Positions 6,700-58,330 are shown, counted from the first letter of the stretch. The stretch is 64,000 nucleotides of DNA from Octopus sinensis (GCF_006345805.1 NC_043003.1:30256001-30320000), one strand, 5' to 3'. Notes: generated by a model from the sequence alone, not told the origin. Program-made: numbers and translations.

Positions 6700-6902
6700 T
6701 TTTATATTTTTCAGTCATAAGACTGTGACCATGCTGGAGCACTGCCTTAAATAATTTCAATCAAACAAATTGACACCAGTTCTTTCTTTTTTATGCCTGG
6801 TACTTTTTTTATCGGCTTCTTTCACTGAACTGCTAAGTTATGTGAATGCAAACAGACCACCAGTTATCAACTGGTGATGGGGAACAAACACAGACACAAA
6901 AC

Positions 6903-6915
<13 letters not shown>
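6700..6915 (-). mobile_element. tRNA-derived SINE, 3' half
   Basis: TCAGTC..GACTGTGACCATGCTGGAGCACTGCC..GGTACTT..ATCGG..GAACTGCTAAGTTA is the reverse complement of the 3' half of the complete copies at 34748-35098 and 45925-46310. Confidence 0.7.
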
Positions 6916-6977
<62 letters not shown>

Positions 6978-6978
6978 A

Positions 6979-7225
6979 TCTTCTATAATAATAACTACTG
7001 AGTTTCTTAACTCTTTGAATCCTCCTGGAATGCCTTCTCACAAACTGACATTGAAGAAAGGAGCTCCAATTATAATTTTGAGAAATCTGGATCTCTCAAA
7101 ACTGTGCAATAGAACATGACTGATTGTCAGGCAAATGCATCCACATCTATTGGAAGCAACAATCCTCACTGAGCAAGGAAAGGGAGAAAATGTGTTAATA
7201 CTCCTTACATCAGAGTATTTAAAAA
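6979..7225 (+). mobile_element. Internally deleted Helitron: 5' terminus joined to a PIF1-helicase fragment
   Basis: A|TCTTCTATAATAATAA (Helitron-type 5' TC terminus after a TA tract) is followed at once by [51 protein letters not shown], a Helitron PIF1 C-terminal motif. Confidence 0.85.
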
Positions 7226-9615: not shown

Positions 9616-9811
9616 TCTTTTAATCTTTTACCCTTTTATGTATTACTAGTATATATTTCTGTAGCACAGTCTTTGCATGTGTATGTATTCTTATAACACT
9701 CCCTTTTGTTTTGGAATAAAAAGCCATAATAGAATGTCTACTGACTGATGTGTCATTTTTGCATATCCCCATTTTCTTTTTGTCATATATATGTATATAT
9801 ATATATATTTA

Positions 9812-10050
9812 CAGGAAGTTAATTATATGGCCGGTCATAGAGTGACCAATGGTTTTACATCCATAAAGCGCTTAGTCTTATATATGACTTGTCAGACTCC
9901 AATGGCCAGATATAACCTCTCTTCAAATACTTTGAAGAGAGATTATAAACCTGTAATCATCGGAGTCTGACAAGTTGTCTATAAGGCTAATTGCTTTATG
10001 AATGCGAAACTATTGGTCAGTCTACAACCAGCCACATAATTAACCTCCTG
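9812..10050. mobile_element. Fold-back Tc1/mariner-type MITE with TA target duplication
   Basis: TA|CAGGAAGTTAATTAT...ATAATTAACCTCCTG|TA. The whole element is an imperfect palindrome (~116-120-bp arms) centred on CTTCAAA-TAC-TTTGAAG (loop 9928-9930). Confidence 0.85.
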
Positions 10051-10269
10051 TAAATATATTACTGCCTTAACTTTTAGAGTGTGCTTCTTTTTCATATATA
10101 TGATCCACTGATGATATATATATATATTAAGACACATGTGCTTGTCCCTGTATCATACTTTAACCTTCAAAACCTGGCATAAAGAAACTCTTCCCTCTCA
10201 AATACACTCCTACTCTGTCAAAGGGATTTTTCCTGTTCCTTTCTTTGCTTTGCAAGTTACTTGATGATC

Positions 10270-10686: not shown

Positions 10687-11422
10687 AGCACTTCAGTTAC
10701 AGGATTATCAAATCAATTCAACATATCAGACTAAAAAAAGATTCACTCTTACTGAAGCACATGTAGATTCTTTGGATGGTACCTATGAATGAAAATTCTA
10801 ATATTAATTTGTAGAATAAAAGTATTTAAGATGAATTATGAAGAGCTCTAAGTAGTAACCCTGTCAGTAAAATGAGTTTATAATCAGATTACAGGTTAAA
10901 ATTATTTTCTAATAAATCAGTAGCAAATTTAACAGACAATTACATTTGAATGTCAATAATTTAAAACAGAATTTTAAATATTTATATAATTCAGATTTTA
11001 GAACAAAGTTTACACAGACAAGTTGCAGTTTCTGTCTATCTGAAAAAGTAAAATTAACTAACGCAAGGAAATAAAATGTAAACATTACATTGTGAAAGAT
11101 CTGTGCTTGGATATTTTCAAAATTCCTTACTACACAAATATGTGAGAGGATGAAAAAAGACAGTTGTACAGAGTCAAGAGTGCTGGATATTACAGCCATG
11201 TATTTTATAATTTCAAATCAAATAGTACAAATATGACAAACATAATAAAACAGTATAGATACTATCTTCATTCATTTTTCCATGACAAAACAATAAAACA
11301 GTATAAATACTATCTTCATTCATTTTCCCAAAATTTACTATAAATTCAAATGTAATTACATATCACAGATGTATCCAATAGTGGCTTGATGTAATATTGT
11401 GAAATATTTCTCAATTTTAATA

Positions 11423-11590
11423 GGCACAAGCATAGATGTATGATCAATAAGTTTGCTTCCCAACCATATGGCTTCTTGTTCAGACCCACAGTGCCGCACC
11501 TTAGGCAAGTGTCTTCTCTTTTAACCCTGGGCCAAACAAAACCTTGTGAGGAGATCTGGTAGATGTAAAGTGAAAAATACCATTATATGT
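11423..11590 (+). mobile_element. tRNA-derived CORE-like SINE, 5' half
   Basis: tRNA-like head followed by CACCTTAGGCAAGTGTCTTC (CORE-domain-like motif) and AAAACCTTGTGAG. Confidence 0.65.
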
Positions 11591-11619
11591 ATATGTATAT
11601 ATATAAATTTGGAAATATG

Positions 11620-12058
11620 CTGTGTGTGAGAATACCCGGCAGGACAAGTGAGACCATAACCCGTGGCCTTTACCTGTGATGTAGCCAGTCCACTTATGCA
11701 TACCTTTCTTTCTTTGGACACAAAACTTTGCTTGTGAAGACCTGTTGAGGCAAGTGAAATTGAAATCGATCAAAAATCAATGGAAATTGTAGTTGTGATA
11801 CCAGTGCTGGTGGCATGTAAAAAGCACCATCCGAACATGGCTGTTGCCAGCTCTGCCTCAACTGACTTCCATGCTGGTGGCACGTAAAAAGCACCCACTA
11901 CACTCACGGAGTGGTTGGCGTTAGGAAGAGCATCCAGCTGTAGAAACACTGCCAGATCAGACTGGAGCCTGGTGCAACCTCCTGGCTTCCTAGACCCCGG
12001 TCGAACCGTCCAACCCATGCTAGCATGGAAAACAGACGTTAAACGACGATGATGATGA
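11620..12058 (+). repeat. RTE-family 3'UTR copy (longer), ending in (GAT)n
   Basis: Reverse complement of the 3'UTR at 55344-56060. Contains two GCA(C/T)GTAAAAAGCACC units and ends GTTAAACGACGATGATGATGAT. Confidence 0.85.
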
Positions 12059-12483
12059 TATATATGAGTGTGTGTGTGTCTGTATTTATTTACATCTGAA
12101 CTTGCTTATTTGAAAGTCACATCATATCTGTGGTGTTCTGAAGACATTTCTCCTGTCAACAGATTGCCCAATCACTTCTGCCAAAGTTATGTGGAATAAG
12201 AGATCCATTACTTGAAAAACAAGCAAAGATAAGCATCAGAATGAGTATCTAGCCATAAAAGAATGCCTCAGTAACATGTTTGTCTAACTCATGCTAGTAC
12301 GTAAAAAGGGATATAAAACAGACAAATAAAATTGTTGTTTAAATGTATTGCTGACAAATTACATCAGTATTTTGAGATTATATTTTGCCACAAATCTCAA
12401 ACTTATTTGGTTTATTATTTTTGAACATGCATAGAACAAGTTGTATGAGCATTCTGAAACAGAGACACATCTATCCACAGAAG

Positions 12484-14181
12484 TTACAGTGGTATGGTTT
12501 CTTTCTTGCATGGGGATATTTGTGAAGTCAATTCACTATTACGAGAAAATTTATTACCAGATATCACAGTATTATAGTCTCTTGTGTGAACACGCATGTG
12601 AGTAGTCACATTTCCATTACGAGAGAATGCTTTACCACAGATATCACAATGATATGGTTTCTCTCCCGAGTGAATACGTTTATGACTAGTCATATTTCCA
12701 ACAGAGGAGAATTTTTTGCCACAGATATCACAATGGTATGGTTTCTCACCTGTGTGAATACGTATGTGCCTAGTCAAATGAAAATTACGGGAAAACTTTT
12801 TACCACAGATATCACAATTATATGGTTTCTCACCTGTATGAATACGTTTGTGAAGAGTTAGTTTAGAAGTAGAAAAAAATGTCTTACCACAGATATCACA
12901 AGGATAGAGTTTCTCACCTGTGTGATTAAGCATATGAGAAGTTAAACTAGGCTTTTGGGAGTATGCTTTACCACAAATATCACAGTGGTATGGTTTTTCC
13001 CCTGTGTGACAACGTTTATGAATAGTCAATTCACCGTTACGTGAGAATGTTGCACCACAGATATCACAATGGTATGGTTTCTCACCTGTATGTATACGTT
13101 TGTGAACTGTCAAAGCACTACTACATGTGAAAGTTTTACCACAGATATCACAATGGTAGGGTTTTTCACCTGTGTGAGTACGTTTGTGAACAGACAAGGT
13201 ATTACTACGAGGAAATGTTTTCCCACAAATATCACAGTGGTATGGTTTCTCACCTGTGTGACTACGTTTGTGAATAGTCAATTCACCATTACGAGAGAAT
13301 GTTTTACCACAGATATCACAGTGAAAGGGTTTCTCACCTGTGTGAGTACGTTTATGGTTAACTAAATGTACATGCATATAAAATTTGTTACCACAGATAT
13401 CACAATGGTATGGTTTTTCACCTGTATGCTTACGCTTATGAACATTCACTTCATAATTACGAGAGAATGTTTTACCACAAATATCACAGTGGTATGGTTC
13501 CTCACCAGTATGAGTACGTTTGTGAACAGTTAAAATACCATTACGAGAGAATGTTTTACCACAGATATCACAATGGTATGGTTTCTCACCTGTGTGAATA
13601 CGTTTGTGACTAATCACATTTCCATTGTATGTGAATGATTTACCACAGATATCACAATGGTATGGTTTCTCACCTGTGTGAATACGTTTGTGACTAGTCA
13701 AATGCTCATTCCAAGAAAAATTTTTACCACAGACATTACAGTAGTATGGTTTCTCCCCTGTGTGAGTACGCTTATGACTAGTTAAATAATCATTCCGAGA
13801 GAATGTTTTACCACAGATATCACAGTGGTATGGTTTCTCACCTGTATGTGTACGTTTGTGTCTCATCAAAATTCTACTGTTAGAAAATGTTTTACAACAT
13901 ATATCACATTGGTATAGTCTTTTAACTGTGTGAGTACATTTGTGTGATAACAATGAACCCTTTGTAGTGAACCCTTTGCCACAAACTTTACAATGGTAAA
14001 CATTTGGACTTGTGCAAAGTGACTTGTGTTTACTAATATATTTATGCCTTATAAATGTTTTTTTCTTGATGTCACAGTGTTCAGATTTCTTCTTTAAATC
14101 TTCCTTAGTTTTGTGAGAAAAGTCATTAGTCTCACAATGTGTGTCATTATAAACTTGATTTTCACACAGTTTCTCCTCCAT
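12484..14181 (-). CDS. C2H2 zinc-finger protein (ZNF-A), 565 aa, 17 canonical fingers, no KRAB/ZAD/BTB/SCAN domain evident
   Basis: Open frame with 17 C-x2-C-x12-H-x3-H repeats, mostly joined by TGEKP linkers. ATG taken at 14181 (MEEKLCENQ) by homology with paralogs B and C; the track's start at 14205 is a non-ATG codon. Confidence 0.95.
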   Translation of the reverse strand: MEEKLCENQVYNDTHCETNDFSHKTKEDLKKKSEHCDIKKKTFIRHKYISKHKSLCTSPNVYHCKVCGKGFTTKGSLLSHKCTHTVKRLYQCDICCKTFSNSRILMRHKRTHTGEKPYHCDICGKTFSRNDYLTSHKRTHTGEKPYYCNVCGKNFSWNEHLTSHKRIHTGEKPYHCDICGKSFTYNGNVISHKRIHTGEKPYHCDICGKTFSRNGILTVHKRTHTGEEPYHCDICGKTFSRNYEVNVHKRKHTGEKPYHCDICGNKFYMHVHLVNHKRTHTGEKPFHCDICGKTFSRNGELTIHKRSHTGEKPYHCDICGKTFPRSNTLSVHKRTHTGEKPYHCDICGKTFTCSSALTVHKRIHTGEKPYHCDICGATFSRNGELTIHKRCHTGEKPYHCDICGKAYSQKPSLTSHMLNHTGEKLYPCDICGKTFFSTSKLTLHKRIHTGEKPYNCDICGKKFSRNFHLTRHIRIHTGEKPYHCDICGKKFSSVGNMTSHKRIHSGEKPYHCDICGKAFSRNGNVTTHMRVHTRDYNTVISGNKFSRNSELTSQISPCKKETIPL

Positions 14182-14631
14182 GTTGTTTGTTAAAAAAAAG
14201 AACAACTATAATTCCTTCCTTTATTGTTATTTGTGAAGTCAAATTGGTTGTTCATAAGGGGTATGCTAAACTACTGAGCACAAGGTCATGAAATAAAAAC
14301 ATACTGTTAATGGTAGTCTATTTAATCTGACAATTAGAATATTTTAAATGTGTCTCAGCTATTAATAAGCTTCTTTTAAATATATTGGAGAACAGTCATT
14401 CCTCACAAGACATTACTCATTAGCCATGTCAAATCTTCTATTAAATTTCTTGAGTTCGATCATCGTATAAAATCAGCCATGGAATTTATTTCAATGGACC
14501 TCAGAAAATTGCTGTAAAGTTAGATAACACTGTTTTATTTTCTATAAAACCATTCTTAAAACTTTCATATTCTTCAAAGATTTGTTGATGTGTCTTGGGT
14601 GAAAAATTGTCACCTCAAGTTACCAGATAAC
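14182..14631 (-). other. Putative 5'UTR part of the last exon of ZNF-A, starting at a conserved splice acceptor
   Basis: TCTCTTTATTTCAG|GTTATCTGGTAACTTGAGGTGACAATTTTTCACCCAAGACACATCAAC matches the acceptor regions at 24040/24041 (B) and 37688/37689 (C). Confidence 0.6.
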
Positions 14632-15464
14632 CTGAAATAAAGAGATAATAACTCATATCAGACAATTAAATATCATCACAAATGATATTAGAGAAAAATA
14701 TTGAGAGAAAACATGATGTGAGTTTTGATTTGTGGAACAACACTAGGTTATCATGTATCTATTCGAGAAAATTATCAAAGTTTCATGGTGTCATTGGAAA
14801 ATTGGAGTGAAGCATGAAGGTTGCATGGATGAATGATACCTGTGTACAGAAGAGTTATAAGGAAAGAGTAATATCATCTACATACGAATGTGTGTTACTA
14901 GAGCTGACAGCAAGTAAGTAGTTAAAGTACAAAAACAACGTATTGGAGAAAGTTCTGCCAACATAGATATCAATAATGCTGTCATCTATTAAGTTTCTGA
15001 TCCAAGGAGAATATTGAAGCTGAGTTTCAAGATTTAGTCAATATTTATTTTAAGTTTCTGGATTTAGTCATGCACTATTTTTCCATGAACCTCTTTCATT
15101 TGACTTAAATATTTTAAATTTTTGTAGCATTTCTGATCTTTCTGATGTCTAAGGATGGACATTAATGTGTGTGTGGCGTTTTTCAAATGTAATTCTGGAT
15201 AATTAAAAGGGCAAATTTACATTATCTTACTAATTTTGCCCCAGCAAAATTAGTAAGATAATTAGCCAAAAAAAGAACAGTGATAATTTTCTGAAATAGT
15301 GTTCTGAATATATTATTGTTTTTAATACATTTAGAGAAGGTCATTTGCTTCGCTGATATAGGAATTGTAAGGAGGTGAACATTTATAAAATATATTATTT
15401 CTCAAGGTCAGAAGCACATTAAATATTCCTCATTGCCCTCTTTGTTAAAAAGTTTATCTTTTAT

Positions 15465-15693
15465 CCTTTACTTGTTTCAGTCAATTAAACTGCAGCCATG
15501 CTGGCAGTCTTGAAGAATTTTTAATCGAATGAATCGACCCGAGTATTTTTTAGCTTGGTATTTATTCTATCGGTCTTTTGCTGAACCGCTAAGTTACGAG
15601 GGCGTAAACAAACCGACACTGGTTGTCAGTGATGAGGGACAAACACAAAGACATAAACACATATATACATACACACACACACACACACATATA

Positions 15694-15747
<54 letters not shown>

Positions 15748-15890
15748 AGGTTTCTTTCAGTTTCCGTCAATCAAATCCACTCACAAAACTTTGGTCAGCC
15801 GAGGCGATAGTAGAAAACCCTTGCCCAAAGTACCATGCAGTGGGACTGAACCCTGAACCATGTAGTTGGGAAGTAAACTGATCAAACGCA
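15465..15890 (-). mobile_element. Full-length tRNA-derived CORE-like SINE with internal (TA)n/(CA)n tract
   Basis: Reverse complement of the 34748-35098 and 45925-46310 family, from the head GGTTCAGTCCCACTGCATGGTACTTTGGGCAAG to the tail CAGCATGGCTGCAG..ACTGAAACAAGTAA. Confidence 0.85.
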
Positions 15891-16078
15891 AGGCTTGCAC
15901 CTCGTTGAAGTGCAAGAGACTTTCAAAGTGAACCAACTCGGAACAGTCTGATAAAAGTGTCAATTAATGATAACGATATTTGCCGGAGGGTGACCCTGGC
16001 TAAGAATAACGATATTAATCTACATAGGTCTGTAGATCTACGACATTATATCAGCAATAGATAGATAGATAAGGAAAG

Positions 16079-16172
16079 GGCGGAGGTAAACAATACGCAC
16101 ACCACCCGACTTCGGCGTAACCCTAAACCTAACCGCCGAAAACGGGAGGTGTGTGTATTCTTTACCTTCACC
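16079..16172. mobile_element. 94-bp palindromic mini-MITE with 9-bp target-site duplication and telomere-like loop
   Basis: 39-bp arms (32/39 complementary) with GG...CC ends and loop TAACCCTAAACCTAAC. A perfect TAAGGAAAG direct repeat flanks it at 16070-16078 and 16173-16181. Confidence 0.85.
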
Positions 16173-16545
16173 TAAGGAAAGATATGACATTCATTTCTTC
16201 GCAGCGTCGCATGTTTTATGTGATTCATTCCGACGATCATTTGATCAGTTGTATTTAAAATGGCTACCAATTGACATTTATAAAAACAAATTATTATTCG
16301 GCTAAATAACACTTCTGGAGTAAAAGAATACAGTCCAATAAAGATTCACTTGAATAAATGTTTACTGTAACACTTCATTGGACTTGAATAAATTCCTTAC
16401 TCGACTCATAACTTCGTGTGATTTTAAAGCACTTTTGCAAGATGCCTTCTTTTATGTCCATCGGTTTCTTCACTTTATCTTACTGAACTCATCAAAACAA
16501 ACAAATGACATGTGGAAGAAAGACAGGTATATCAATAATACTTAC

Positions 16546-16722
16546 ATATTAATATAGACCTATGTAACAATATTAGAACGTAAGTTGTAATGTGACAACG
16601 ACAGCTTCCAAGCTTTTGCAGCAAACATTGATTTCCATTTTCAAAGCAACAAAGAATCTGTACTGTTCCTCTACACAGTTAATTAGCAATCGATCCAACT
16701 GAATGGCAGATATAACCAAGAA
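16546..16722 (-). other. Putative internal non-coding exon of ZNF-A
   Basis: Acceptor TTTTCTCTAACAG| (16723) and donor AT|GTAAGT (16545). The sequence is homologous to 19726-19931 (+) and ~31295-31495 (+). Confidence 0.55.
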
Positions 16723-17754
16723 CTGTTAGAGAAAAATAACCAGCTAAGAAGATTAAGACGAGAAAATTTGGGAACAATAAACCGACAGGGGAAATAACTC
16801 TAATTGTATTTTATTAATAAGCTACTGTTCTAAAAGAATTCTACGTGACAATTCTTCATTAAAACTACTAGTTTCACATTAATTATTGTCACTATAATCA
16901 TCAAATATATATATTTTTCTATTTTAGTATAAGTTTGTGTGGCTGCCAGTGAAGAAACCATGTTTAGGCTGATGGGAATGTTTTTTATCCAACGAAGTCA
17001 TAGTACAAATACTAGTTTCGAATTTAAAAAAAATCTAAAATACGAGAATATTTCAAGTATTAAATTTTTCTATTATGAAATAAAACAATAGAAAATATTC
17101 TTTATATCTTTGTATAAAGATGTAAAACACAAGAGTATTTCAGTCATCTTTCTATTTTATTTTTATGAAGTAAATTTACTCAATGCTTTTCAATAGCCGG
17201 AGGTTAAATAACTTGAAGATAATAACTACAAATAAATTGGAAAATCTCACGATCAAGTTGCTGATTAAGCTATGATCTGCGATCTACAAAAAACAAAATA
17301 ATCATATATTCATTTCTCTATGTTAGCTTTCAGCCACCAAGAATTAAAACTGAACTATTAATTGCCAGTAAGGAGACTATCTCGTTTTGCGACCATAATA
17401 TACTATCAAGCCTATTGAGCGTTTATAAATGAATAGTGTGCCTTTATTATTATTAATTGATTTTTATTTTGCAGCGTTATTGTTCCAGTGTACTCAATTA
17501 CATAAATATTCCACATTAAAATACACATCGAAAACCAAAGATAACACAATCATGAGCGAAAAAAAAAAGAAAGAAGAAAAACATCAATTCAACACTAAGC
17601 GTCTCAGTCGATCGCGTGCAATAAGGCTCAACGAAACCTATTGAAGCAAGCCAACACGCTCGCAGCATTACCGCAGATGATGGCGAGGTTACGGCGCTGT
17701 AACAGCCAGGCACCCACACTGGCATTACCTGACACCTCAGTAAGGCGAGCTGCT

Positions 17755-18115
17755 AACGATGACAGGAACTTCGCTGTCAGCTGCACAGCTCTTCCAAATA
17801 TCTCAAAAGTCACAGGCCGGGAGAAATGGTTCACCGACAAGTTCCGATACTTAGGGATTTTGTTCCGATGTCCTCCGACTCATTCGAGTGACTACTTATA
17901 CTGGCCCGACCCATAAGGTAGGTGCCTCATCTGAGACGCCAATCAGTGACTCCTTTGCCACCCTAACATCCTGGATGCTGTAGTAAACGGGTGAGTCTTG
18001 CTTCTGTAGCCGAACGGAACAAAATCCTAAAATATCGGGAATTGTCAGTAAGCCCTTTCTCTACTTTGTGACCTTTGAAGGAGCTGGGCCGCTAACAAGA
18101 GTTCTTGTCATCGTT
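17755..18115. promoter_or_regulatory. CpG-rich imperfect inverted repeat: likely bidirectional promoter with mirrored first exons of ZNF-A and ZNF-B
   Basis: Arms 17755-17867 and 18015-18115 are reverse complements around a 147-bp spacer containing CGCCAATCAG (CCAAT at 17939-43). Donors sit at homologous positions in the arms: CG|GTGAAC (-, 17834) and CA|GTAAGC (+, 18048). CpG density is high relative to the flanks. Confidence 0.65.
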
Positions 18116-18531
18116 TTGTGTTGGCAGTCCATTGTTTCCATTTTAAGTTTATCTCTACTGGGTTTGTACAGAGTTCAGAGCCAGCCCTGAAAGTTATGAC
18201 ATTTCTATACGAATACGACTATGTAAACAATGAGATCGAAGACAGAAAACATAGGTAAAGCGTGTATATGCATATTTCAAAAGTTATTGTTTTTTCTTCA
18301 GCACCACATCCAAGTCATCTACAAACGCTTTGGTTAAATATCCATTAAGTTTATGTGTGTAACGCTATTGGATAGACCAATTTACATATTCAACACATTC
18401 CTTGTAACTGAAACTTAAATATTAATTCCTAACAAGGAGGTAGTATTTCGTTTTGCAACCTTAAAAACTAATGTGTGTGCGTGTGAAAGAAATGTCAGCT
18501 TTTTTTTCTATTTTAAATAAATTATATTATT

Positions 18532-18936
18532 GGGATCTTTTCGGTTTGAACGGCAGTTTTTAACATAATTTCTAGGTAACTAAAAAATTTTAAACTTCGT
18601 ATACTGGTAGAATGTGTTTATAAAATATCTTTTTCTCTTGGCTTTATTGAGAAAATTCTATAGTTTGTAAGATATTTGGTTTTTAATTTCTTGCATTTCG
18701 GCAATTTCAACCAATCAATGACAATCTATTGAGGTGAAAACATTCTGTACCGTATGAATATGTCCCTCGTTTAAGAAACAGATTGGGTTTATTTACATTT
18801 GTGAAGAAAAAAAGATACCCTTCCCCTAACCCTAAAATAGATTGAAATGCAATAGATCGATACTAGGGTCATAATTATGGGTGACAATTTCATATGACAC
18901 CGCTAGAAAAACTGCCGTTCAAACCAAAAAGATCTT
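18532..18936. mobile_element. Non-autonomous DNA transposon (MITE), ~405 bp
   Basis: TIR GATCTTTT(C/T)GGTTTGAACGGCAGTTTTT at both ends (28 bp, 1 mismatch), with ATTATT on both flanks. Internal CCCCTAACCCTAAA at ~18824. Confidence 0.8.
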
Positions 18937-19725
18937 ATTATTGTCCTCAGACAGAGAGAGAAATCCATTTCTCTACCGTAAGCTTTCATATATTCTTGTT
19001 TACTTTTCGAAATGACATCAGTTTGCAATTACTTTTTAGTGTATTTGTTTGTTTTTGTCTTTTTCAACAGAAAAAAATGTTTTGTTTTCAATAATGTAAC
19101 CCGTAATGATGTTTAATTTCAAGTACTTGTTGTTCGTTTCACTCCTGCTTGATGTCCATGTCTATTTTTGTAGATTCTCTGTTTCAGTTTTTCCATTTTC
19201 AATTGCTCACTTAGATCCGTACTCCTAATTTTTTTTTTAATTAGCTAACCAGTGTCAAATATATAACACGTTACTGACATTTACCAACTCATTATTTTAA
19301 CCATGAGAAATATTATTTTCTATTATTTAATCTTTTAGCGTTAAAAATATCAAATAATTGAAATCATAAAAAGTAGAAGTATTTTTGTAATTTGCTCCAT
19401 AAAAATTATTTCAGCAACATTACCTTACAAAAAATTAAAATTTCCATTCTTTTAAAATGTTTTAAACAAAACAGTATTTATAAAGCGAATAAATATTCGA
19501 AACTTAGGCTATGAAAACGAAACTATCTGCCAGTCTTCCGCCAATCATCAAAATCACCAAAAGTAAATATTAGACGAAGTATATTCATCATGTCGAAGAT
19601 GATAATGAAGTGTGGAAAATCATAAGGCAACTTATAATAATCAAGTACACAGCTTTTAGACTCCTTGACAATAGAGATACTTCTCTTGACTCTTAAATTT
19701 TCACAAATTCTGTTCACATCTATAG

Positions 19726-19931
19726 CCGTCATCTGTACTTAACTATCATTTAGACGATGAATTTGAATATAGTTGATTGGTAATGAACTCTGTAAGACAT
19801 ACAGAATTCTTGATTAGTGAACTTAAGAATAGAAATTAACGTTTATCGTAAAAGGCTGAAGTTCTCTTGAAGCTATCATTATCCACTCTTACTTGAACAA
19901 AGGCAACATATTACACATTGTGACTACGTAT
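19726..19931 (+). other. Putative internal non-coding exon of ZNF-B
   Basis: Acceptor TTCTGTTCACATCTATAG| (19725) and donor AT|GTAAGT (19932). TGATTGGTAATGAACTCTGTAAGAC..TACAGAATTCTT mirrors the ZNF-A exon. Confidence 0.55.
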
Positions 19932-20134
19932 GTAAGTATGTTAATATAATTATCTACATAGTACTACGTTATTTTTCATACGTTTGTTTTTATATGCTTA
20001 ATAATAATATAAATTTTACGAAACTAATTGATATTCTCATGTTAGACTAATGATGCTGTTATCCTCTCTCCTGCCTCATCTGATTATCTTCACACTACAT
20101 AAAACATGAAGGTTCGCAGAGAAAACAGAAATTG

Positions 20135-20625
20135 ATGTAGAAGGGGAAGGTGGCGAGGAGGGTATCGAGGTAGGCAGTGATAAGTTCAGTATGGTCAGTT
20201 ATTAGTGGAGACAATTGGGCAACTGGGGTTTTGGGGTTTATGGATCGATTAGGTTGGAAGTAGTGGGGGAGGAGGGCACGGGGCGATGGAAGGAGTTCCA
20301 CAAATGTACCACTGCATTTCTGTAGAGGTTGGCCCGCCATACCACCACGTCAGCGCCCTTGTCCGCCGGTTTGATGACGATGCCGTCGCAGTGAAGAGGG
20401 GAATAGAGAGTGACAAGTTCGGTTCTGGAGTTGCTCTTGCGTTATGATGGTTTGGGGAAGTTGAAGTGGTTAATTGCATGGCGACCAGCATCACTGAATA
20501 GATCCAGATTGCTGAAATGGCTAGGAATCGGTGGTGACCGAAGCAAGTGAAGCAACTGGAAGCAGTTGGTGCAGGAGAACTGTTGCCATAAAAAGCATAT
20601 AGCTAGATACAGTGCAGAAACCATT
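20135..20625 (-). mobile_element. Penelope-like retroelement fragment (N-terminal RT region)
   Basis: The minus strand reads ..GIVIKPADKGADVVVWRANLY.. and ..TELITAYLDTLLA.., both characteristic PLE RT motifs. Confidence 0.8.
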
Positions 20626-23539
20626 CAATTTTAGTATGGGTTTGGAACTGTGTCCATCTCCAATGTTTGTTTTGGCATGGTTTCTATGGTTAGGACACCT
20701 TTCCTAAAAACCAACTGTTTTACAGTGAATTGGGTGATTTATCTATGAGACCAGCACTAGTGAGGTTGACAATTACTTGCAAGACAGAAAAGACTCTGAG
20801 TGGGATTGAAGTAGATGGGGAAGTGGCTTTATGTCAGGTGTTGAAAGACAGAAGTTTGATAGAGGTACAGGCACAAGTGTCTTGTTATAGAGGAGATACA
20901 TGTTTATCTTGCATTATATAAGGATGAGTGGGAGTAGCTGGAAAGAAGACAATGATGGTGATGGCAAGGTGTCAGAGCATACTCTTAAGATAGAAGAAAG
21001 TGAATATGAGGGAATATAGACAAAGAATCCGGAAGTGTGGGTAGGTAAACTCATTAGAGTGTAAGAATGGCAGATGATTAGCGTTGGGCATAGAGGTCAT
21101 TGCAGTAAATGGATCAAAGAAACCTGATGGAGAGAATGAAAGTCATACTTGTAATCTTTTTCTCAGACTTTGTATTATCTAATTTGTCTGTACACTTTTA
21201 ATTCTGTATGGTGTTTGTTGAGGGAAGATTTGGCTGCTATCTCTAGCAGGTTGAGCAACCACATAGAGACTCATTTGCTAGCTTGTCTACTTTACTCTAG
21301 TAAAGTCTATATGTGTGATTTCTCTATATGTTCAGCAACTGTTTAAAACTGAAGTATTTTATAGATCTAAGCATGAGCCTCAATCTTTATGATGTAGCCT
21401 TTAAAATATATTGTTTCTATAAAGGTTAAAGAGATTTTAAAACCTCTCATTGTAATGAGCATTTATGGATGTCCTGTTTGAGTGTGATTTGTTGGTACAT
21501 ACAGTTTGTGTTTTTGTTTAACAAGACCAAATTATCAAATCCCAATTGTATGATGTTTTTCAGGTCCTTTTCATGGTATATAATCGCATCATGTAGGAAA
21601 TGTTGATGTTTTGTTTGAATAGGATTTATATACAGAAGATGATGCAATAAAGATTAAATTAAATACGGAATGCGTAGGATTAGGTTGAGAGTGGGTTAGT
21701 AATGCAGTTAAAGAACTGTCTCGGAGAGATAACATTGTTCTTAAATATACCCAATTGATAGAGTATCTGTGGTAGTGCTCTGAGTGATAATTAAGTTGGT
21801 AAAGTGATACCACGAGAGGAGAATGATTGAAGTGAAAATCATGTAAAAAAAATAACAACTTAGCTTTCACCATATTTCTGACAGGGAGAGACTAGTGATG
21901 AGTAATGTTCAAAAGAAATAATCTAATGACTTGAGCTCTACAGATCATATACTGGTGATCAAGAAATTAAACAATCAAAGTGTAAGCTCTGCATGTTTGT
22001 GCATGAGTTTAGGACAGCTTGCACAATGTACTTAGCTATAGAGAATGATTCAAGATATAAACATATTTACTACACTAAGTTTTGATGTTAGATTGATTAA
22101 CCAAACTCATTTACATTATAATTGGGATTACTATGTGCATTTAATATTATTAATACTTGTTAAGAACTTTAGAATAATTGTTAAGGGAAAATGGCAGTAG
22201 AGGATTAGATGGAAAGTTGTGTACAGTCAGTGGGTTGAAATAAAAGTAGACTCTGCTGTAGTAATAGTAGCATATACAACTTTATAGGGAAGTCAAATAA
22301 CCTCTTATGATTACAGTCCAGAATATGTTGGTATGAATGATCAACTGTTGGACATATTTGAACATTCTGTAATTTTATTGTGTTTATTGCCTCATGCAGT
22401 TGACTGAAGCACTTCAGTGGGAGTAAATGAAGTTGCAATATGTAGTACCTGGTTACTTCGTCCCACAGGAAAGTATAAATTTGACAATTTGAAACTTCTC
22501 ATCCCATTTCACATGTTATGACCAGTTCTCTGCCTCTGGTCTGTTCTCTCAAACGTCTACACATCTTCCCACAGTGCTCTAGTACTTCAGTTAACTCAAT
22601 AATTCTAAACCAGGGTGATAGCACCCCTTGGTTGGGGGTGCTACCGGCTAGGTTTAGAATAACTGTGGTATTGTAAACTCATAAAGAGGTATTATAAGAA
22701 GTACTAGGTGTTTAAATGCTGTTATTTTCCTTAGAAATAAAATATTTAAACAAAGTGCAATACTTATATTTCATATACATTTTCAAAAGAACTTTGTGTC
22801 AAGCATAAAATATAATACATTGTTTTTTCAGTGAGCAGAAGTATGTGTTGATGTGACAGAATAAAAATCTTATTTTATTATATAAATCACCACCTTCTCT
22901 AGTAATTTTCATAAAATTCAACATAAGGAATAATAATCCAGGTAAATATTTAAAAGAAGGCATAGATAGGATAATATAAGGAAATATGAATGATAAACCA
23001 TAGCATGAAATTGCCGATTTCATTTAGATAATCTGCTTTTGATTTATTTAATTTGTAAAATATGGGAGGAGGTGTGCCATTTGGAGGAAAGGAGCATTAA
23101 GCTACAAAATGATGAAAAGCATTGAATTAACTGATCAAGTTCCACCACTTCTGAGACAACTAAATATATATGTAACTAACACCATCTTCCAAACTATACG
23201 CCTTTACATTCCTCATACAACTAAATCTTTTAACTCTCAAATGTTTTTTTTTTATTGCTACTGAGTTGTAGTAATATTATCAGTGAACACTGCAAACAAT
23301 TCCTGGAGGAAGACACTGGTACCAACCTGATTATCAAACTTTAACAACCTTTTATTAATTATATATATGTTCTGTTTATTCTATCATTCATAGACATTGC
23401 TTCATCATCATCGTTTTAATTTTTATGGATGGATACTCTTTCTGTTGCAAACTTACAAGCAAGCTAATTTCCCTATGGCCATTTTCACAAAAGATTGGAA
23501 ATGAAAGAACTGCTTTTATGATGGTGATGCTCATTTGCA

Positions 23540-23770
23540 ACTATCACATGATGTCGAGACAAGGCAATACAAACACACACTCTCTCTCTCACACATGCAC
23601 ACACACACATACATACACAACAGATTTCTTTCGGTTTCTGCCTACCAAATCCACTCACAAGATTTTGGTCATCTCTGGATGACACTTTCCCAAGGTGGCA
23701 TGCCATGGGACTGAACTTGAAACTGTGCTTGGGAAGCAAATTTCTTAACCACACAGCTATATCTGTGCCA
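23540..23770 (-). mobile_element. CORE-like SINE, 5' half
   Basis: CCAAATCCACTCACAAG..GACACTTTCCCAAGGTGGCATGCCATGGGACTGAAC..TTCTTAACCACACAGC. Confidence 0.7.
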
Positions 23771-24040
23771 TAAATACATAAAGAAGATTTCACTCTGTGT
23801 TTGTCTATATTTATTATATTCTGCTTCCCTTAACTTCTCATCCCATTTCACATGATGACCAGTTCTCTGCCTCTGGTCTGTCCTCTCAAACTTCTATTCT
23901 TATCTATCATAAATCTCATGATATTTTTCCATAGTTTTCTTCAGTCTCTTTCTTCCAGTTCTATCTTTCATTATCTCTGATGTCTCTTCTTTGTTCATAT
24001 ATAATTATCTCTCATTTTTTACTATCTCTTTTTTTTTTAG

Positions 24041-24526
24041 TGTATCTGGTAATAACTGAGTTGACAATTTCTCACACAAGACACATCAAGAGATTTATGA
24101 AAAATATGAAAAGCTGAAGAATGACTTAATAGAAAAAATATAACAGTGGTTATATAACCTAAAGAAATATTTCAACATTTTTTGAAAATGAATGGAAAAT
24201 TTAGCACAGTTGATGTAAATATTAGCCACATGTTGTATGCTTGAGCTGAGTCATATAAATTCAAGGATTAAATCTTGGAGAAGAAATCTGTCCTCAAACA
24301 TACTTGAAAGATGTTATGTATAACTGAGACAAAAGTACAAATATTTTCAAATATTTATGTCACATAAAATAGACTGTATTATCAGTAAGTTTTGATCTCC
24401 TGATTATTCAGTAGTCTAGCATGTTAATCACAGTGTCTCTTTGCCTTCTAACCACACAATTTATTTTCACAAAATTATATAATAATAATAAAAAGGAATA
24501 ATATTTTATGACCGACAAATCACATA
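24041..24526 (+). other. Putative 5'UTR part of the last exon of ZNF-B
   Basis: Polypyrimidine tract plus TTTTAG|TGTATCTGGTAATAACTGAG..TTTCTCACACAAGACACATCAA, homologous to A and C. Confidence 0.6.
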
Positions 24527-25801
24527 ATGGAGGAGAGACTGTCTGAGAATCAGGTTTCTAACGAAACACAATGTGAGAATAATGAGTTTAATCACCAAAC
24601 TGAAGAAGATGTAGGGAAGAAATCATACCACTGTGACATCGAAGGAAAGACATTCATGAAAAGTAAGGACTGCAATGAAGACAAACCATTTCAAGCAGGT
24701 TCAAATGTTTACTGTTCTAAAATATGTGGTAAAGGATTTATCAGAAGTTGTTCTGTATCTCCACATCAATGTATTGAGACATGTGAGAAACAATATCACT
24801 GTAATATGTGTGGTGAAGCATTTTCTTGGAATAAAGATGAACATTCAGCTAGTCATGTATGCACTCACACAGGGGAAAAATCATACTGTTGTGAATTCTG
24901 TGGCAAAACATTTGCGTACATCGGAATTGCAAATACCCACAAACGTACACACACAGGTGAGAAACCATTCCGCTGTGATATCTGTGGGAAAGTATTCTCT
25001 CGTAAGGGTATCTTAACTGTTCACAAGCGTACACACACTGGTGAGAAACCATACCACTGTGATATCTGTGGCAAAACATTCTCTCGTAATAGCCAAGTGA
25101 TTGTTCATAAACGTAGTCATACAGGTGAGAAACCATACCAATGTGATATCTGTGGTAACAAATTTTCTATGCATGTACATTTAGTTAATCATAAGCGTAC
25201 TCACACAGGAGAAAAACCCTTCCACTGTGATATCTGCGGTAAAACATTCTCTCGTAATGCTGAATTAACTATTCATAAACGTAGTCATACAGGTGAGAAA
25301 CCATACCAATGTGATATCTGTGGGAAAACATTTCCTCGTAAAAATACCTTGACTATTCACAAACGTACACACACAGGGGAGAAACCATACCACTGTGATA
25401 TCTGTAGTAAAACATTTTCTTGTAATAGTGACTTGACTGTTCACAAACGTATTCACACAGGTGAGAAACCATACCCTTGTGATATCTGTGGTACAACATT
25501 CTCTCGTAATGATAAATTAACTATTCACAAACGTAGCCATACTGGTGAGAAACCATTCTCCTGTGATATCTGTGGTAAAACATTCTCTCAGAAGCCTAGT
25601 TTAACTTCTCATATACTTACTCACACAGGTGAGAAACAGTACCCTTGTGATATCTGTAGTAAAAGTTTTTCTACAAATTCTAATTTAACTATTCACAAAC
25701 GTATTCATACAGGTGAGAAACCATATAATTGTGATATTTGTGGTAAAAAGTTTTCTCGTAATTTTCATTTGACTAGACACATAAGCATTCACACAATTTA
25801 A
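24527..25801 (+). CDS. C2H2 zinc-finger protein (ZNF-B), 424 aa, 11 canonical fingers plus 1 atypical; paralog of ZNF-A
   Basis: Open frame. Fingers are colinear with A4-A15 (e.g. MHVHLVNH, QKPSLTSH and RNFHLTRH are shared). N-terminus MEERLSENQ. Confidence 0.95.
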   Translation: MEERLSENQVSNETQCENNEFNHQTEEDVGKKSYHCDIEGKTFMKSKDCNEDKPFQAGSNVYCSKICGKGFIRSCSVSPHQCIETCEKQYHCNMCGEAFSWNKDEHSASHVCTHTGEKSYCCEFCGKTFAYIGIANTHKRTHTGEKPFRCDICGKVFSRKGILTVHKRTHTGEKPYHCDICGKTFSRNSQVIVHKRSHTGEKPYQCDICGNKFSMHVHLVNHKRTHTGEKPFHCDICGKTFSRNAELTIHKRSHTGEKPYQCDICGKTFPRKNTLTIHKRTHTGEKPYHCDICSKTFSCNSDLTVHKRIHTGEKPYPCDICGTTFSRNDKLTIHKRSHTGEKPFSCDICGKTFSQKPSLTSHILTHTGEKQYPCDICSKSFSTNSNLTIHKRIHTGEKPYNCDICGKKFSRNFHLTRHISIHTI

Positions 25802-26712
25802 AAACTATAATACTGTAAAATCTGATAATTCAGTTTCTAATTATGGTAAATTGACTGTTCATATACCTACCTACACAAGTAAGAAACCTTCGTTTTTTAC
25901 CTGTGAGTTGCTTGGTGAAAACATTCTCTTGATTGTTCATATATAACTTGAGAATTGATACCACAGGGAATTCTGTGTTCAAACAGTCTCTCAAAATGTT
26001 AATTTGACTTATAGACATATTTACATCATCCACATCATCATTGTTATTGTTTCAATGCCAGATTTACCATGCTTTCATGGGTCATATCGAATTCATTGAT
26101 CAGATTTTCTATGGCTGGATGCTCTTCTTGTCACTAACCCTCATCATGGCTGGACATGTTTTCATGAAAGACACCACTTGTATGATGGTAGTGCTTGTTT
26201 GTAATTGACACCAAATTTCCAGAAAGGGAGAGACACACACATATGCATATGTAAATATATAATAATCTTCCAGTTTCTAACTACCAAATCCACTCATAAG
26301 GCTTTGGTAGGCTTGGAGTTATAGTAGAAAATACCTGCTCAATGTGTCACAGTGGGATTGAACCCAAAACCACTGTGTAATAAATCAAACCATTGAGTAA
26401 GCATTTCCCTGATATCTATGGTTAAGTTATTTGAAAGATTAGGTTGATTAATCACAAATTAATCTACTCAGGTGAAAAAGCAATCCACCATGAATTCTAT
26501 GGGCATACATTGCCTCAGAATGCTCATTCAGCACATGATATATTCATGTATATAATAACCAAACCAATGTGAGATTTGAGGGAAAACATTATCTCAGTAC
26601 TAATTTAATTAGTCACAAATATACTTAAAACTCATGAAAGATATTATCACAAAATTATATCAAACCACAGAAAAGTAGTTGGGGAGATGTACTTCAGTGG
26701 AATATTTGTCAT

Positions 26713-27110
26713 CATCATCATCATTTAATGTCCATTTTCCCATGCTTCCATGGGTCAAATAGAACTTGTCGAGGCAGATGCCCTTCCTGTTGCCAACCCT
26801 CACCTGTTTCCAAGCAAGGTAATAATTTCCCTGTAGCCAGACATATTTTCAAGGAAGACTGGAAATGAAGGACACCGTTTGTATGCTGGTGACATTTGTT
26901 TACAACCATTGTGATAACCAAACAAATGAATACTAACACACACACACATACACATTTATGATAGGCTTTCAGTTTCTATGCACCAAATACACTCACATGG
27001 CTTTGGTTGGCCCAGGGCTCTAGAAGAAGAGACACTTGCCCATGGTGCCATGCAGTGGGACTGAACCCAAAACCATATAATTAGAAAGTAAATTAAATTA
27101 CATAGCTCCC
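26713..27110 (-). repeat. (CAT)n-tailed retroposon 3' fragment followed by a SINE 5' half
   Basis: CATCATCATCATCATTTAATGTCC..GATGCCCTTCCTGTTGCCAACC, then GACACTTGCCCATGGTGCCATGCAGTGGGACTGAACC. Confidence 0.6.
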
Positions 27111-28442
27111 ACCCTCTGGGAAAATGGGTAATATGAGAATTTATTCATTTTGATTGTGAAATACTATATCATTTCAGAAATTTTTGTCGTATTTGAATTT
27201 TATTGAAAAATTACTAATACACAACTGTCATGTTTAGCATCACTTATTCTTATAAGTTTGTCGTACAACTCATCTCTGTGGGTGAGAACCTTTTTGAAAA
27301 TATCCACACATTGACCTTTTCTTCTAATTAAAATATACTTTTTATATTTTTCAAGTGATTAAATTTTAACTTTTATGAAAGACAGTAATTTCAATTTAAT
27401 TATTTAAACCTTGTCTCAGAATCTGAATTTTATACACACACACACAGAGTTTTAAAATTAGCATTAAAAATATTTGGCTGATATGTTTCCTAATTATTTA
27501 TTTGAGAATGATTTGATTACAAACTCACAATCATCAGTTTTGTTGCTACGAGCATTTAAAAATTCATATTAAGTGTACTTTTTACTGTGATGTAATAACA
27601 CCGGAATTATGTTTGGTGGGTGCTTATGTTAATAGCTGCCATTTATTCTATATTAGACTTTGCCAAAATATATTATCCTCTATTTAAGACACATACAAAA
27701 ACAGTAGAAAAATAATGAGTTGCAGTTAACTTGTCAAAGGCAGAGGTCAAGAAGCTAATTTTACCTCAGTTATAAAAACTCTGAGAACTTCTGTAATTTC
27801 TGTTTATATATATCAAAAAAGGATCAAAGGCTCTTCATGAGCCATAAGCTCATAAGGCTAGTTTCCCAGATTCTATTGCGTATACATTCCCCACTGGACG
27901 GACACCATTGCAGGATTTCTCATTTTAACAGTCGAGTGCACTAGCACAATATGAAATGTGTTTTGCTGAAGATTCTAATGCATTGCCCACTCCAGCAATT
28001 GAAACCACTATAAGTTTTCTTAGATACCAATTCAATTAATAAACATTAAAAGCTGATTGAGCAACTATTTTTAAACTAACAGTGTATAGTTGGATGAAAT
28101 GGTGATTGTAATGGAACAAAATATAGGTGGGCAGGGCAGTAAGGAATATTTACTGCATTTTTGACTTTGGGAAAAAAATTTTTTTACAAATGGCAGAGTT
28201 TCTACAGCTGGATGCCCTTCCTAACGCCAACCACTCCGAGAGTGTAGTGGGCGCTTTTTATGTGCCACTGGCACGGGGGCCAGCCAGGTGGTACTGGCAA
28301 CAATCTCACTCGAATAAATATATAAATTCTTTTAAAACTGTCTTGCAGTTATATTTCCAACATGGTTTATTCGAGAATATTTAAAATATCTTATGTGGTT
28401 GCATATGCTTATCAGTATCTTACTGCTGTGAACAGCTGACAA

Positions 28443-30600: not shown

Positions 30601-31294
30601 GTGGTATGGAAGCAGAGAAAGGTAGCTTGCATGTTCCAGATGCAGATAGTTCTTCACATTTGCTAGTTCAAGCATAGTTTGTGGTTGAGCCTGTGGCAGT
30701 GGATACCTCCAGTGTTCTTCGCTCTTGGATCTCATCCCTGCTCTCTACTATTAGTATGGTTATGGTTATCCACAAGTTTGAGCCCCATGATTCAGAGTGG
30801 TTGTAATGTGTTACACAGAAGTTTGAAAAAAAAAAAAAAGAAGACCTGTCAAATCAAGAACTAACAAACGTCTCCCCTGGGATGACCATGAGAAAGCATC
30901 TCCAAACTAACAAGCACAATACTAATGAGAATCTTCAATACTTTTAGCCTATGCTGCTAACATTATTTACATATCTAACCCTTGCTAACAATAAAAGTAG
31001 CATACTTTGCTTAGGCATTAGAAACCATGAAAGAAAAGAAACAAGGAGTTACAGAAAATCTGCAACTAAGAGATAAATTTGGTTGTAAGATCTGAATTGA
31101 GCATAGCTGATTTAATTAGAAACAGCGGTCCACTTGTGTGTAGCAGAAAAAGTCATTTGCTGCATAGCAAATTCGGTGTTAAAATTTTTTAGTTAACTGT
31201 AGAATTATGTCCCCTGACAATTTGTTAAATCCCTATTCCGTTCAATTGCTGCAGTTGTTTGGTTTAAATTGATATTCCTTTGTCAGTTTTAGTC

Positions 31295-31730
31295 TAAAAC
31301 TGCTACATAGTTGGATCAAACTAAATATAGTTGATTGGTATTTAACCGAGTATGGTTTCTTTATTACGTTGAGCCAAAAATGGAAATCAAGTTTTGTTGT
31401 AGAATCCTGAAGCTGTTATTGTTCACTAGCACTTAGGTTGTTAATGCTTAAGCAAATTTAACATCTTCCATATTAAGTCTATATTAACATTTATACCCAG
31501 CAATATTGTATACATGTCATTTTTCATGCATCTTTTTGTTTTGATATTGCTTATAATTGAAATAAAAGAAAGAAGCTGAAAGAACATAACATGAATTTTA
31601 CGAAACTAATTGTTATGACATCTCACGAGATTCTCGTGTTGGACCAAGGTTGCCGTTATCCTCTCCTACTTTATTAATTCTGCACTTCATAACAAAACAT
31701 GAAAGTTCATAGAAAATTAAAAAGAGAAAA
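31295..31730 (+). other. Paralogous copy of the ZNF non-coding exon and following intron (unit C)
   Basis: AAAATGGAAATCAA..GAAGCTGTTATTGT..GTCTATATTAA matches the ZNF-A exon (16546-16722). TTTACGAAACTAATTG..GTTATCCTCTC..AAAACATGAAAGTTC matches 19995-20115 in ZNF-B. The GTAAGT donor is not retained here. Confidence 0.65.
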
Positions 31731-32010
31731 AAAATTGCAGTGAATTGATTTTGTGGTGAGGTATGAAATGTCTAATGTCTCGAACATTCGTATAGAAAGA
31801 ATATAGAGGCTAATACCACGATCGCAGGCAGACAAGGCAAACTGCTACGCTTAGGAATTTTATGGATTAACTTTTGCCAACACAGACCACTACCACCAAC
31901 AACACCATTCCCTTGGATTTAAGATCTTAGCTTCTCATAAAATATGGCGGACATTGGGGAATTGAACCCCTCCTCTCTGACAAAACTTATAGCTTCTCGT
32001 TAAAGTGAGA
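31615..32010 (+). promoter_or_regulatory. Candidate promoter/first exon upstream of the Tigger ORF
   Basis: TCTCACGAGA (one mismatch to TCTCGCGAGA, ~31621), locally raised CpG, AATATGGCGG (YY1-like, ~31942) and a possible donor AAA|GTGAGA at 32005. Confidence 0.4.
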
Positions 32011-32364
32011 GCGTTTCATTATTTTTGTGAGATAATACATTTTTCTTGGTAAAATGAAAAATTAGTATTGACTTGCTTTCTTCATATATATGTATATATA
32101 TGTGTATATATATAGAGAGAGAGTCGCTTATTATAATCACGGATTATGTTATCAAAGGTTATTGTCATCAAAATGAAACTTTTCTAAATACTTTATTTAA
32201 TGTAAAGTTATTCACTTACTGCTCTAGAGATTGTTATCAAATTTTTCAGTTAAGCTGTTTTCGTTGACATTTGTCAGAGACCAAACAAAGTTGTGATATT
32301 GATATTTATTTATATTGTTTCCTAATTAAATAAAGTGAGCATAGGCGACTATTAAAACTTCATC

Positions 32365-33903: not shown

Positions 33904-33914
33904 TTGTTAATAAG

Positions 33915-35098: not shown

Positions 35099-35429
35099 AT
35101 TATATATATATATATATATATACACACATTATGTGTGCAGCTCAGTGGAAATAGGTAGTGTACTTTATTCACTGATCTTGTTGGTTCAAGTCTTGTGTGT
35201 GCTTTTCACCTTACCATTGCCACCATAACAACTGCCACTGATCATTACCAATGCTACTTAGAACTAGCATTACTAGTTCCAGTACTACTATCACTGTTAA
35301 TTATGTGTTGCCAGGACCAATACAGATGATGGCAAGATTAAAGCTGCAGGTATATTAGCTACAGAGAGTTTCTAGTTGTATGGTGTTGGTGGTGTATAGC
35401 AGTTGTGATGATGGTGCAGTGTAAAAGCA

Positions 35430-35790
35430 TGTTGGTGTTTGGAATGGAGATAAGTTGGTCCATGTGGCTGGGTATACATATATACGACAATGATCTCATT
35501 GTTGCTGCTAGGGACTTCAATGACAACCTCATGGCATCTTTCAAAATATACATAAAACTTTGGATATGGTACAAGGGATCAAGGCTTCTGGAGTTTTGAG
35601 ATGCAAATGACCTAACCATTTACAACATAAACTTCTGGAAACCTACCAATCCAATGAACACAAAACCCAGATAGACTTCATTCTCACCAGTAAATGGAAT
35701 AAACAGATGGCTGTGAATTCTAAGCTTCTCTTGGTTGAGAATGTTACTCTCAGCAGAGGTTAGTGATTTTTGATTTTAAAGTAAGAGCTA
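35430..35790 (+). mobile_element. RTE LINE apurinic-endonuclease fragment
   Basis: LIVAARDFND..GSRLLEF*DANDLTIYNINFWKP..TQIDFILT. Confidence 0.6.
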
Positions 35791-58129: not shown

Positions 58130-58330
58130 TCATCATCGTTTAATGTCCATGTTCCATGCTGGCATGGGTTGGATAGTTTGACAAGATTCAGGGTGTCAAA
58201 GGACTGGATTGTGCTCCAGTGTTTGCTTTGGTATGGCTTCTATGGTTGGATGTCCTTCCTAACATCGACTTCATAATGTGCATTAGATACTTTTTTGTTT
58301 TTTTATCATGCCACCAACACTTGTGAGGTT
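58130..58330 (-). repeat. RTE-family 3'UTR fragment (decayed)
   Basis: CATCATCGTTTAATGTCCATGTTCCATGCTGGCATGGGTTGG..GGATGTCCTTCCTAAC. Confidence 0.6.

Follow-up and report, generated by a model that had tools for sequence, protein, structure and literature searches.

A head-to-head pair of poly-zinc-finger genes in Octopus sinensis: inverted duplicates of a whole gene around a probable bidirectional promoter

Genes A and B and their mirror homology

The locus described here lies in a stretch of 64,000 nucleotides (nt) from Octopus sinensis (GCF_006345805.1 NC_043003.1:30256001-30320000), which as a whole is called the window in the following. It holds a pair of C2H2 poly-zinc-finger genes, here called A and B, with the coding sequence (CDS) of A on the minus strand and that of B on the plus strand; the predicted first exons diverge and the genes are thus arranged head to head. 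The two are inverted copies of one whole gene unit which reaches beyond the CDS, and judged by its anatomy the short region between them probably works as a bidirectional promoter. The positions of the different parts are collected in Table 1.

A self-comparison of the whole window gives a colinear mirror chain which runs from the hinge outwards through a pair of inverted arms, an island in the intron, exon 2, the acceptor and 5' untranslated region (5'UTR) of the last exon, and the CDS to the 3' flank (10818-12566 in A, 26410-27582 in B). The acceptor and 5'UTR match at 67% (14263-14709 versus 23959-24422, E 2e-43). The exon-2 regions have a weak though significant homology (local z 17), and each of them matches a third copy as well, C, which is described below. 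A preliminary description of the window had proposed that a duplication copied the gene in inverted orientation, with a symmetry continuing through a second non-coding exon and the last-exon acceptors to the finger arrays. This is borne out for the whole unit, since the inverted homology is found outside the CDS as well, all the way from exon 1 to the 3' flank. Unit B carries fragments of long interspersed elements (LINE) and fragments resembling short interspersed elements (SINE-like) at 20.1-21.1 kb, 23.4-23.8 kb and 26.0-27.1 kb. The first of these segments (20100-21150, plus strand, in intron 2 of B) is GC-rich (0.44-0.50) with a strong skew of G over C. It has homology in reverse orientation to 1653-2141, beside open reading frames (ORFs) for LINE reverse transcriptase, and is therefore taken as a LINE 3' fragment which accounts for part of the longer intron of B.

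All eight proposed splice boundaries of A and B are canonical and lie at homologous positions. The exon-2 acceptors consist of pyrimidine tracts followed by AG, and the exon-2 donors of the two genes are identical. The last-exon acceptors, ...TTTCAG/gttatctggt in A and ...TTTTAG/tgtatctggt in B (the slash marks the splice boundary), are homologous too. Many stop codons close the reading frame upstream of each ATG, from which it follows that the CDS of both genes lies wholly within the last exon.

Table 1. Features of the A/B locus and its surroundings (positions counted from the first nucleotide of the window; a slash marks a splice boundary in sequences)
Feature	Position	Strand	Remarks
Duplicated unit A	10818-17874	-	exon 1 to ~1.7 kb past the stop codon
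Duplicated unit B	18008-27582	+	mirror copy; longer through insertions in introns and 3' region
Left arm	17755-17867	-	predicted exon 1 of A (about 17867 to 17835) and first ~80 nt of intron 1
Right arm	18015-18115	+	predicted exon 1 of B (about 18015 to 18047) and first ~68 nt of intron 1
Spacer, putative bidirectional promoter	17868-18014	.	147 bp, non-palindromic, GC 0.51
CCAAT box (GCCAATCAG)	17939-17943	+	~72 bp from either arm edge
TATAAG box	17895-17900	-	28-33 nt upstream of the left arm's inner edge
Predicted non-coding exon 2 of A	16546-16722	-	acceptor ...TCTCTAACAG/, donor TAT/GTAAGTAT
Predicted non-coding exon 2 of B	19726-19931	+	acceptor ...ATCTATAG/, donor TAT/GTAAGTAT
Last exon of A	12390-14631	-	acceptor 14631, 450-nt 5'UTR, CDS 14181-12484, AATAAA at 12416
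Last exon of B	24041-26400	+	acceptor 24041, 486-nt 5'UTR, CDS 24527-25801, AATAAA at 26379
Copy C, tandem third copy of the A/B unit, pseudogene	31200-39654	+	exon-2 homologue, acceptor/UTR block, CDS remnant, 3' flank
SINE-like family, copies	11834-12059, 28191-28327, 48757-48980, 55335-55717, 58129-58295, 59201-59377, 61613-61878
Second repeat family (5-8 copies), examples	6698-6990, 15464-15748, 34154-34356, 46097-46298		no Rfam match
Third repeat family (5-8 copies), examples	11400-11618, 15711-15925, 23574-23793, 26946-27104, 34429-34584		no Rfam match

The protein encoded by A has 565 amino acids (aa) and 17 C2H2 fingers; the B protein has 424 aa and 11 canonical fingers, and ends early relative to A. 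The C2H2 fingers are arranged in tandem and joined by TGEKP linkers (Pfam PF00096/PF13465, E 1e-61 to 1e-134). No effector domain of the KRAB, SCAN or BTB type was found in either protein, the Pfam matches being to zinc-finger families only (PF01352 and PF02023 are absent). Along the colinear finger arrays 11 fingers can be paired, the nt identity over 988 nt being 86%, and A has additional fingers at both ends of the array. The DNA-contact residues are the same in 4 of the 11 finger pairs and different in the other 7. Homology to the last two fingers and the tail of A runs on past the stop codon of B (25802-25929 and 26385-26661, plus strand), which argues that B was shortened by a premature stop; at this point B reads HTI followed by the stop where A has HTGEKPY. 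SINE-like insertions are found downstream of the B stop at 26035-26372 and 26709-27075. In collections without cephalopod genomes a protein search with full-length A gave only generic vertebrate and invertebrate poly-zinc-finger proteins, and searches with the N-terminal alignment of A and B, or with the N-terminus of A alone, gave no candidates.

The synonymous divergence (Ks) between A and B is 0.50, with 0.43 in the fingers and 0.75 in the N-terminal part. This is equal to the non-coding divergence, a Kimura two-parameter distance (K2P) of 0.47 in the common 5'UTR and acceptor block, so the whole unit appears to be of one age, the duplication being old and a single event. The ratio of non-synonymous to synonymous divergence (Ka/Ks) is 0.27 overall and 0.20 in the fingers, indicating purifying selection on both copies. 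Recent gene conversion was rejected as an explanation for the 86% identity of the arrays, because Ks matches the non-coding divergence and Ka is low. Though related, the two proteins are not redundant, and both genes appear from their sequences to be functional still, with DNA-contact residues that have partly diverged.

The arms and the spacer

The arms form an imperfect inverted repeat just at the hinge. When 17755-17867 is aligned with the reverse complement of 18015-18115 the alignment has 113 columns, and the identity is 70.8% with gaps counted and 77% at aligned bases (78/101). The match is far above expectation (BLAST E 5e-12 against the whole window; local-alignment z 25 against shuffles), and nhmmer widens it slightly, to 17746-17874 and 18008-18116 (E about 1e-10). 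Read in the sense of its gene, each arm has 33 nt of predicted exon 1, a splice donor and then 68-80 nt of intron 1. The donors are canonical, TCG/GTGAAC in A (G at 17834, minus strand) and TCA/GTAAGC in B (G at 18048, plus strand), and they fall in one column of the arm alignment. The arm edges are 147 bp apart and the donors 214 bp apart; the spacing of the transcription start sites (TSSs) is a prediction. An Rfam scan of the whole window matched no family, and the inverted repeat is therefore not a known structured RNA.

The identity of the arms (77%) is higher than that of the UTR (65%) and of synonymous sites (~63%), with a binomial p = 0.0055, and both the intron beyond the arms and the spacer between them are unalignable between A and B. 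The arms thus stand out as a conserved island, as one would expect if they hold a first exon in use together with its donor and sequence close to the promoter. Presumably they were kept closer than neutral sequence through functions in splicing and near the promoter.

The spacer holds 6 CpG dinucleotides with an observed/expected ratio (o/e) of 0.64 at a GC content of 0.51, and the corresponding means for the window are a CpG o/e of 0.34 and a GC content of 0.35. Among all 500-bp stretches of the 64 kb, 17551-18050 ranks first in CpG density (27 CpG, o/e 0.93). The window values amount to a strong depletion of CpG, consistent with heavy germline methylation, from which the A/B promoter region stands out. 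The midpoint of the arms, which is also the midpoint of the two donors, is 17941 and lies inside the CCAAT box (GCCAATCAG). A spacing of ~72 bp is within the usual range between NF-Y sites and start sites. On the A side the TATAAG box sits 28-33 nt upstream of the arm edge, and on this basis the TSS of A is predicted near 17865-17870. An outward-facing TGAGTC is found on both sides of the spacer, 10-18 nt before the arm.

Several claims of the preliminary description can be judged at this point. The imperfect inverted repeat of about 100-113 bp, the donors at the same position on opposite strands, and the CpG-rich 147-bp spacer with its CCAAT box were all found again. The promoter as such was called palindromic, which does not hold: the palindromic part is exon 1 with the start of the intron, and the spacer has no self-complementarity (p about 0.3). 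Palindromy of the spacer was rejected because its self-reverse-complement score is no better than that of shuffles (13 versus 11.7 +/- 2.9; half versus half p = 0.37). It was further proposed that the genes have one shared core promoter. Of this the CpG-rich region with a central CCAAT box between the predicted exon 1s stands, while the single core is doubtful, since the spacer is asymmetric with the TATAAG box on the A side only. For the same reason we favour two start sites; two back-to-back core promoters with a common proximal CCAAT box would fit the spacer at least as well as one core promoter does.

The rest of the cluster and the repeats

Copy C is found in tandem beside B. It consists of an exon-2 homologue (31290-31570), an acceptor/UTR block (37528-38047), a remnant of the CDS (38048 to about 39100), and a 3' flank reaching ~39654. 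The CDS is frameshifted from 38048 and the GT of the exon-2 donor is mutated to TT; the exon-2 acceptor is retained. The block of acceptor and UTR is kept in A, B and C, with a similarity that begins at the AG and drops upstream of it. No exon 1 or arm belonging to C was detectable in the window (BLAST word 7, nhmmer --max). Within the trio C is the only decayed member, and it is also the one without a detectable exon 1. The pairwise K2P distances among A, B and C are 0.47, 0.45 and 0.58. With the three copies about equally far apart, these distances do not tell whether the inverted or the tandem duplication came first, and no root was obtained for three such taxa without a usable outgroup.

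The cluster has two further, more distant members, D at 50.4 kb (plus strand) and E at 63.4 kb (minus strand), and its layout is <A B> C> D> <E, from which it follows that only one duplication in the window was inverted. Compared within the window, D and E have none of the 5' exon architecture of A and B. All five are KRAB-less poly-C2H2 genes clustered on one O. sinensis chromosome.

Among the contigs searched, exact matches to the two encoded proteins were found on O. sinensis chromosome CM016865.1 (GCA_006345805.1) only. The public gene calls for A and B span the coding ranges only. A public gene model of 749 aa on the minus strand has a range of at least 12484-45801 and covers the whole A-B-C locus. 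LINE fragments lie on the minus strand at 2306-3819 (RVT_1) and 40643-41047 (no Pfam match at E<=0.001, endonuclease-like by eye only), and the 749-aa model may therefore be a spurious chimera of transposon pieces.

Intron 2 of C contains an uninterrupted ORF of 512 aa for a Tigger/pogo-type transposase (32365-33903, plus strand; HTH_Tnp_Tc5 and DDE_1). The ORF is apparently intact, and the element may be a recently active DNA transposon. On its 3' side, at 34152-35096, there is a self-complementary segment of ~950 bp made of inverted SINE-like copies. This is one of three palindromic segments in the window, the others being 9803-10059 and 47354-48361; they are 260-1000 bp long with an arm identity of 63-79%, and are unrelated to the arms of the zinc-finger (ZNF) genes. 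Inverted-repeat structures are thus frequent in the region around the locus. The dispersed repeats comprise 7-8 copies of a SINE-like family, each about 180-260 bp long (68-92% identity, no Rfam match), and two further families (Table 1). The 500 bp second in CpG density, 15751-16250 (23 CpG, o/e 1.0), partly overlap a SINE-like copy and adjoin an (AT)n/(CA)n microsatellite at 15652-15745.

Origin of the pair, use of its promoter, and known systems

We favour a reading in which an inverted duplication of the whole gene gave rise to the pair, with a probable bidirectional promoter between the two exon 1s, and would give it a probability of about 0.68. It proposes that a complete three-exon C2H2 poly-zinc-finger gene was copied once, long ago, in an inverted duplication; this gene would have had two short non-coding exons followed by one exon with a long 5'UTR and the whole CDS. 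With the hinge just upstream of exon 1 the result would be two divergent paralogues, A on the minus and B on the plus strand, whose first exons start ~147 bp apart. The sequence between the arms would be a small unmethylated CpG island, in which the central CCAAT box, of the NF-Y type and ~70 bp upstream of each predicted start, would serve both directions. Each side would have its own start site, with assistance from a TATA element for A only. Head-to-head genes, predicted exon 1s 147 bp apart, the strongest CpG island and a central CCAAT box together make up the anatomy of a bidirectional promoter.

Some observations weigh against this reading. Exons 1 and 2 and the TSSs of both genes are predictions from sequence. 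The last exon holds a 5'UTR of 450-490 nt full of stops, and an internal promoter nearer to the CDS is possible. CpG density does not peak at the centre but further left, over 17500-17900, and the second CpG-rich patch (15751-16250) lies within predicted intron 2 of A, where it could be an alternative internal promoter. The B side of the spacer is without a recognisable TATA or initiator (Inr) element, TATAAG being present on the A side only. The missing exon 1 of C could be the result of decay after pseudogenisation and not its cause. Finally, cephalopod C2H2 paralogues are mostly found in different co-expression modules (PMC12513265), which calls for caution in assuming that A and B are co-regulated.

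As to the way the inverted pair arose, a fold-back or born-inverted origin is plausible, because no more than 147 bp lies between the adjoining 5' ends of A and B and because inverted duplicates, according to a comparative study, are mostly born inverted (PMC3194840). That the spacer shows no mirror homology says nothing on this question, since a neutral intron of the same age is equally unalignable. With the neutral intron beside the arms unalignable, a single-copy spacer is likewise indistinguishable from two decayed promoter halves, and with a Ks of 0.5 no microhomology of a template-switch junction is expected to survive. The alternative that survives best hypothesizes that a tandem duplication came first, that one copy was then inverted, and that a deletion brought the exon 1s within 147 bp of each other, with no fold-back or template switch. 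Tandem duplication has indeed acted at the locus, as copy C of the same subfamily lies in tandem beside B; the near-equal distances among the copies (K2P 0.45-0.58) leave the order of events unsettled, and since neutral sequence of this age is unalignable a mirrored promoter could have decayed. We nevertheless consider this route unlikely, because it needs two or three events with breakpoints which by chance fell just upstream of both first exons, and because inverted duplicates mostly do not arise by later inversion (PMC3194840).

Another alternative, which we regard as quite improbable, concerns the use of the 5' exons. It states that the predicted 5' exons are unused, that A and B start near their own coding exons, and that the arms and the CpG island are a relic or belong to some other non-coding unit. 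The length of the 5'UTR already contained in the last exon, the CpG-rich patch in intron 2 of A and the gene calls on record, which span the CDS only, all agree with it. It is harder to reconcile with the arms, whose identity is above neutral and which have kept a GT donor at the same aligned position, and with exon 2, which has canonical AG and GT in A and B and has retained its acceptor in C. Further, the last-exon similarity starts exactly at the AG acceptor in three copies, and the strongest CpG island of the window is found at the arm region.

That the arms are the terminal inverted repeats of a foldback/MITE-type transposon (MITE, miniature inverted-repeat transposable element) of about 360 bp, inserted between genes that were already divergent, is very improbable: the geometry fits (100-nt arms and a 147-nt loop, DNA hairpin z = -6.2) and the window has the other palindromic repeats mentioned above, but the arm ends lack a target-site duplication (three candidate boundaries), there is no further copy or half-copy of the arm in the 64 kb (BLAST word 7; nhmmer --max, E <= 10) where real SINE-like families recur 5-8 times, the arms are outside all repeat families and sit where the colinearity with exon 2, acceptor and CDS predicts exon 1, and their divergence (Jukes-Cantor distance 0.27) is unlike that of a young insertion. 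The possibility raised in the preliminary description that the arm is a high-copy MITE thus finds nothing to build on within the window.

The same description saw in the pair a concrete mechanism for the expansion of the cephalopod C2H2 repertoire. This goes too far; the pair is one case in an otherwise tandem cluster, with C and D in tandem and an arm which does not recur in the window, and a general mechanism for cephalopod ZNF expansion is therefore unsupported. A more specific idea, which we find highly doubtful, is that the exon-1 arm and the central CCAAT module form a recurrent hinge, the promoters of octopus ZNF genes being preferred sites of fold-back. If it were true, many clusters would hold divergent pairs born with a ready-made common promoter, copies without it (like C) would die, and there would be a promoter-centred rule for the survival of new ZNF copies. 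Returning to the favoured reading, if the promoter is common to both genes the pair would be a clean natural example of an inverted duplication giving a new copy its regulation. Copy C, without a detectable first exon or promoter, offers a decayed comparison for A and B. The pair could also be the starting point for examining, genome-wide, how genes in the ZNF clusters of cephalopods are oriented and how their 5' exons are built.

Divergent histone H2A/H2B pairs are head-to-head genes with a bidirectional promoter, and vertebrate-type bidirectional promoters have TSSs <1 kb apart, a CpG island and CCAAT/NF-Y, are mostly TATA-less, and in most cases pair unrelated genes. The A/B region is like the latter in the head-to-head arrangement, the predicted exon 1s 147 bp apart, the local CpG island and the central CCAAT box. 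It is unlike them in that the partners are duplicates and that one side is TATA-like, and the use of NF-Y in octopus is assumed. About 10% of human genes are head to head with common bidirectional promoters (PMC3082894), and the bidirectional promoter of Mrps12/Sarsm is driven by CCAAT/NF-Y (PMC1802594). Head-to-head paralogues with a common promoter are known from the collagen IV pairs of the COL4A1/COL4A2 type (bioRxiv 10.1101/2023.10.18.563013 / PMC12141075). Like the collagen IV and histone pairs, A and B are inverted-duplicate paralogues which diverge around a short intergenic region; unlike them they are lineage-specific poly-ZNF genes of an octopus cluster with tiny non-coding first exons, and the sharing of the promoter is putative.

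In animals, 10-21% of linked duplication events are of the head-to-head kind (PMC3194840). A and B resemble the born-inverted 'duplogs' of that survey in being linked head-to-head multi-exon paralogues with a synonymous divergence (dS) within the surveyed range of 0-0.6. They differ from them in a hinge within about 150 bp of the first exon, with 5' ends that abut, and the survey leaves promoters aside. With the cephalopod C2H2-ZNF expansions (PMC12513265) genes A-E share that they are KRAB-less poly-C2H2 genes and clustered; the study in question deals with tandem duplicates and with divergent expression modules, and makes no mention of orientation, exon structure or promoters. Seen against these systems, A and B are a well-resolved head-to-head paralogue pair of an already known type, which arose by an ordinary kind of duplication.

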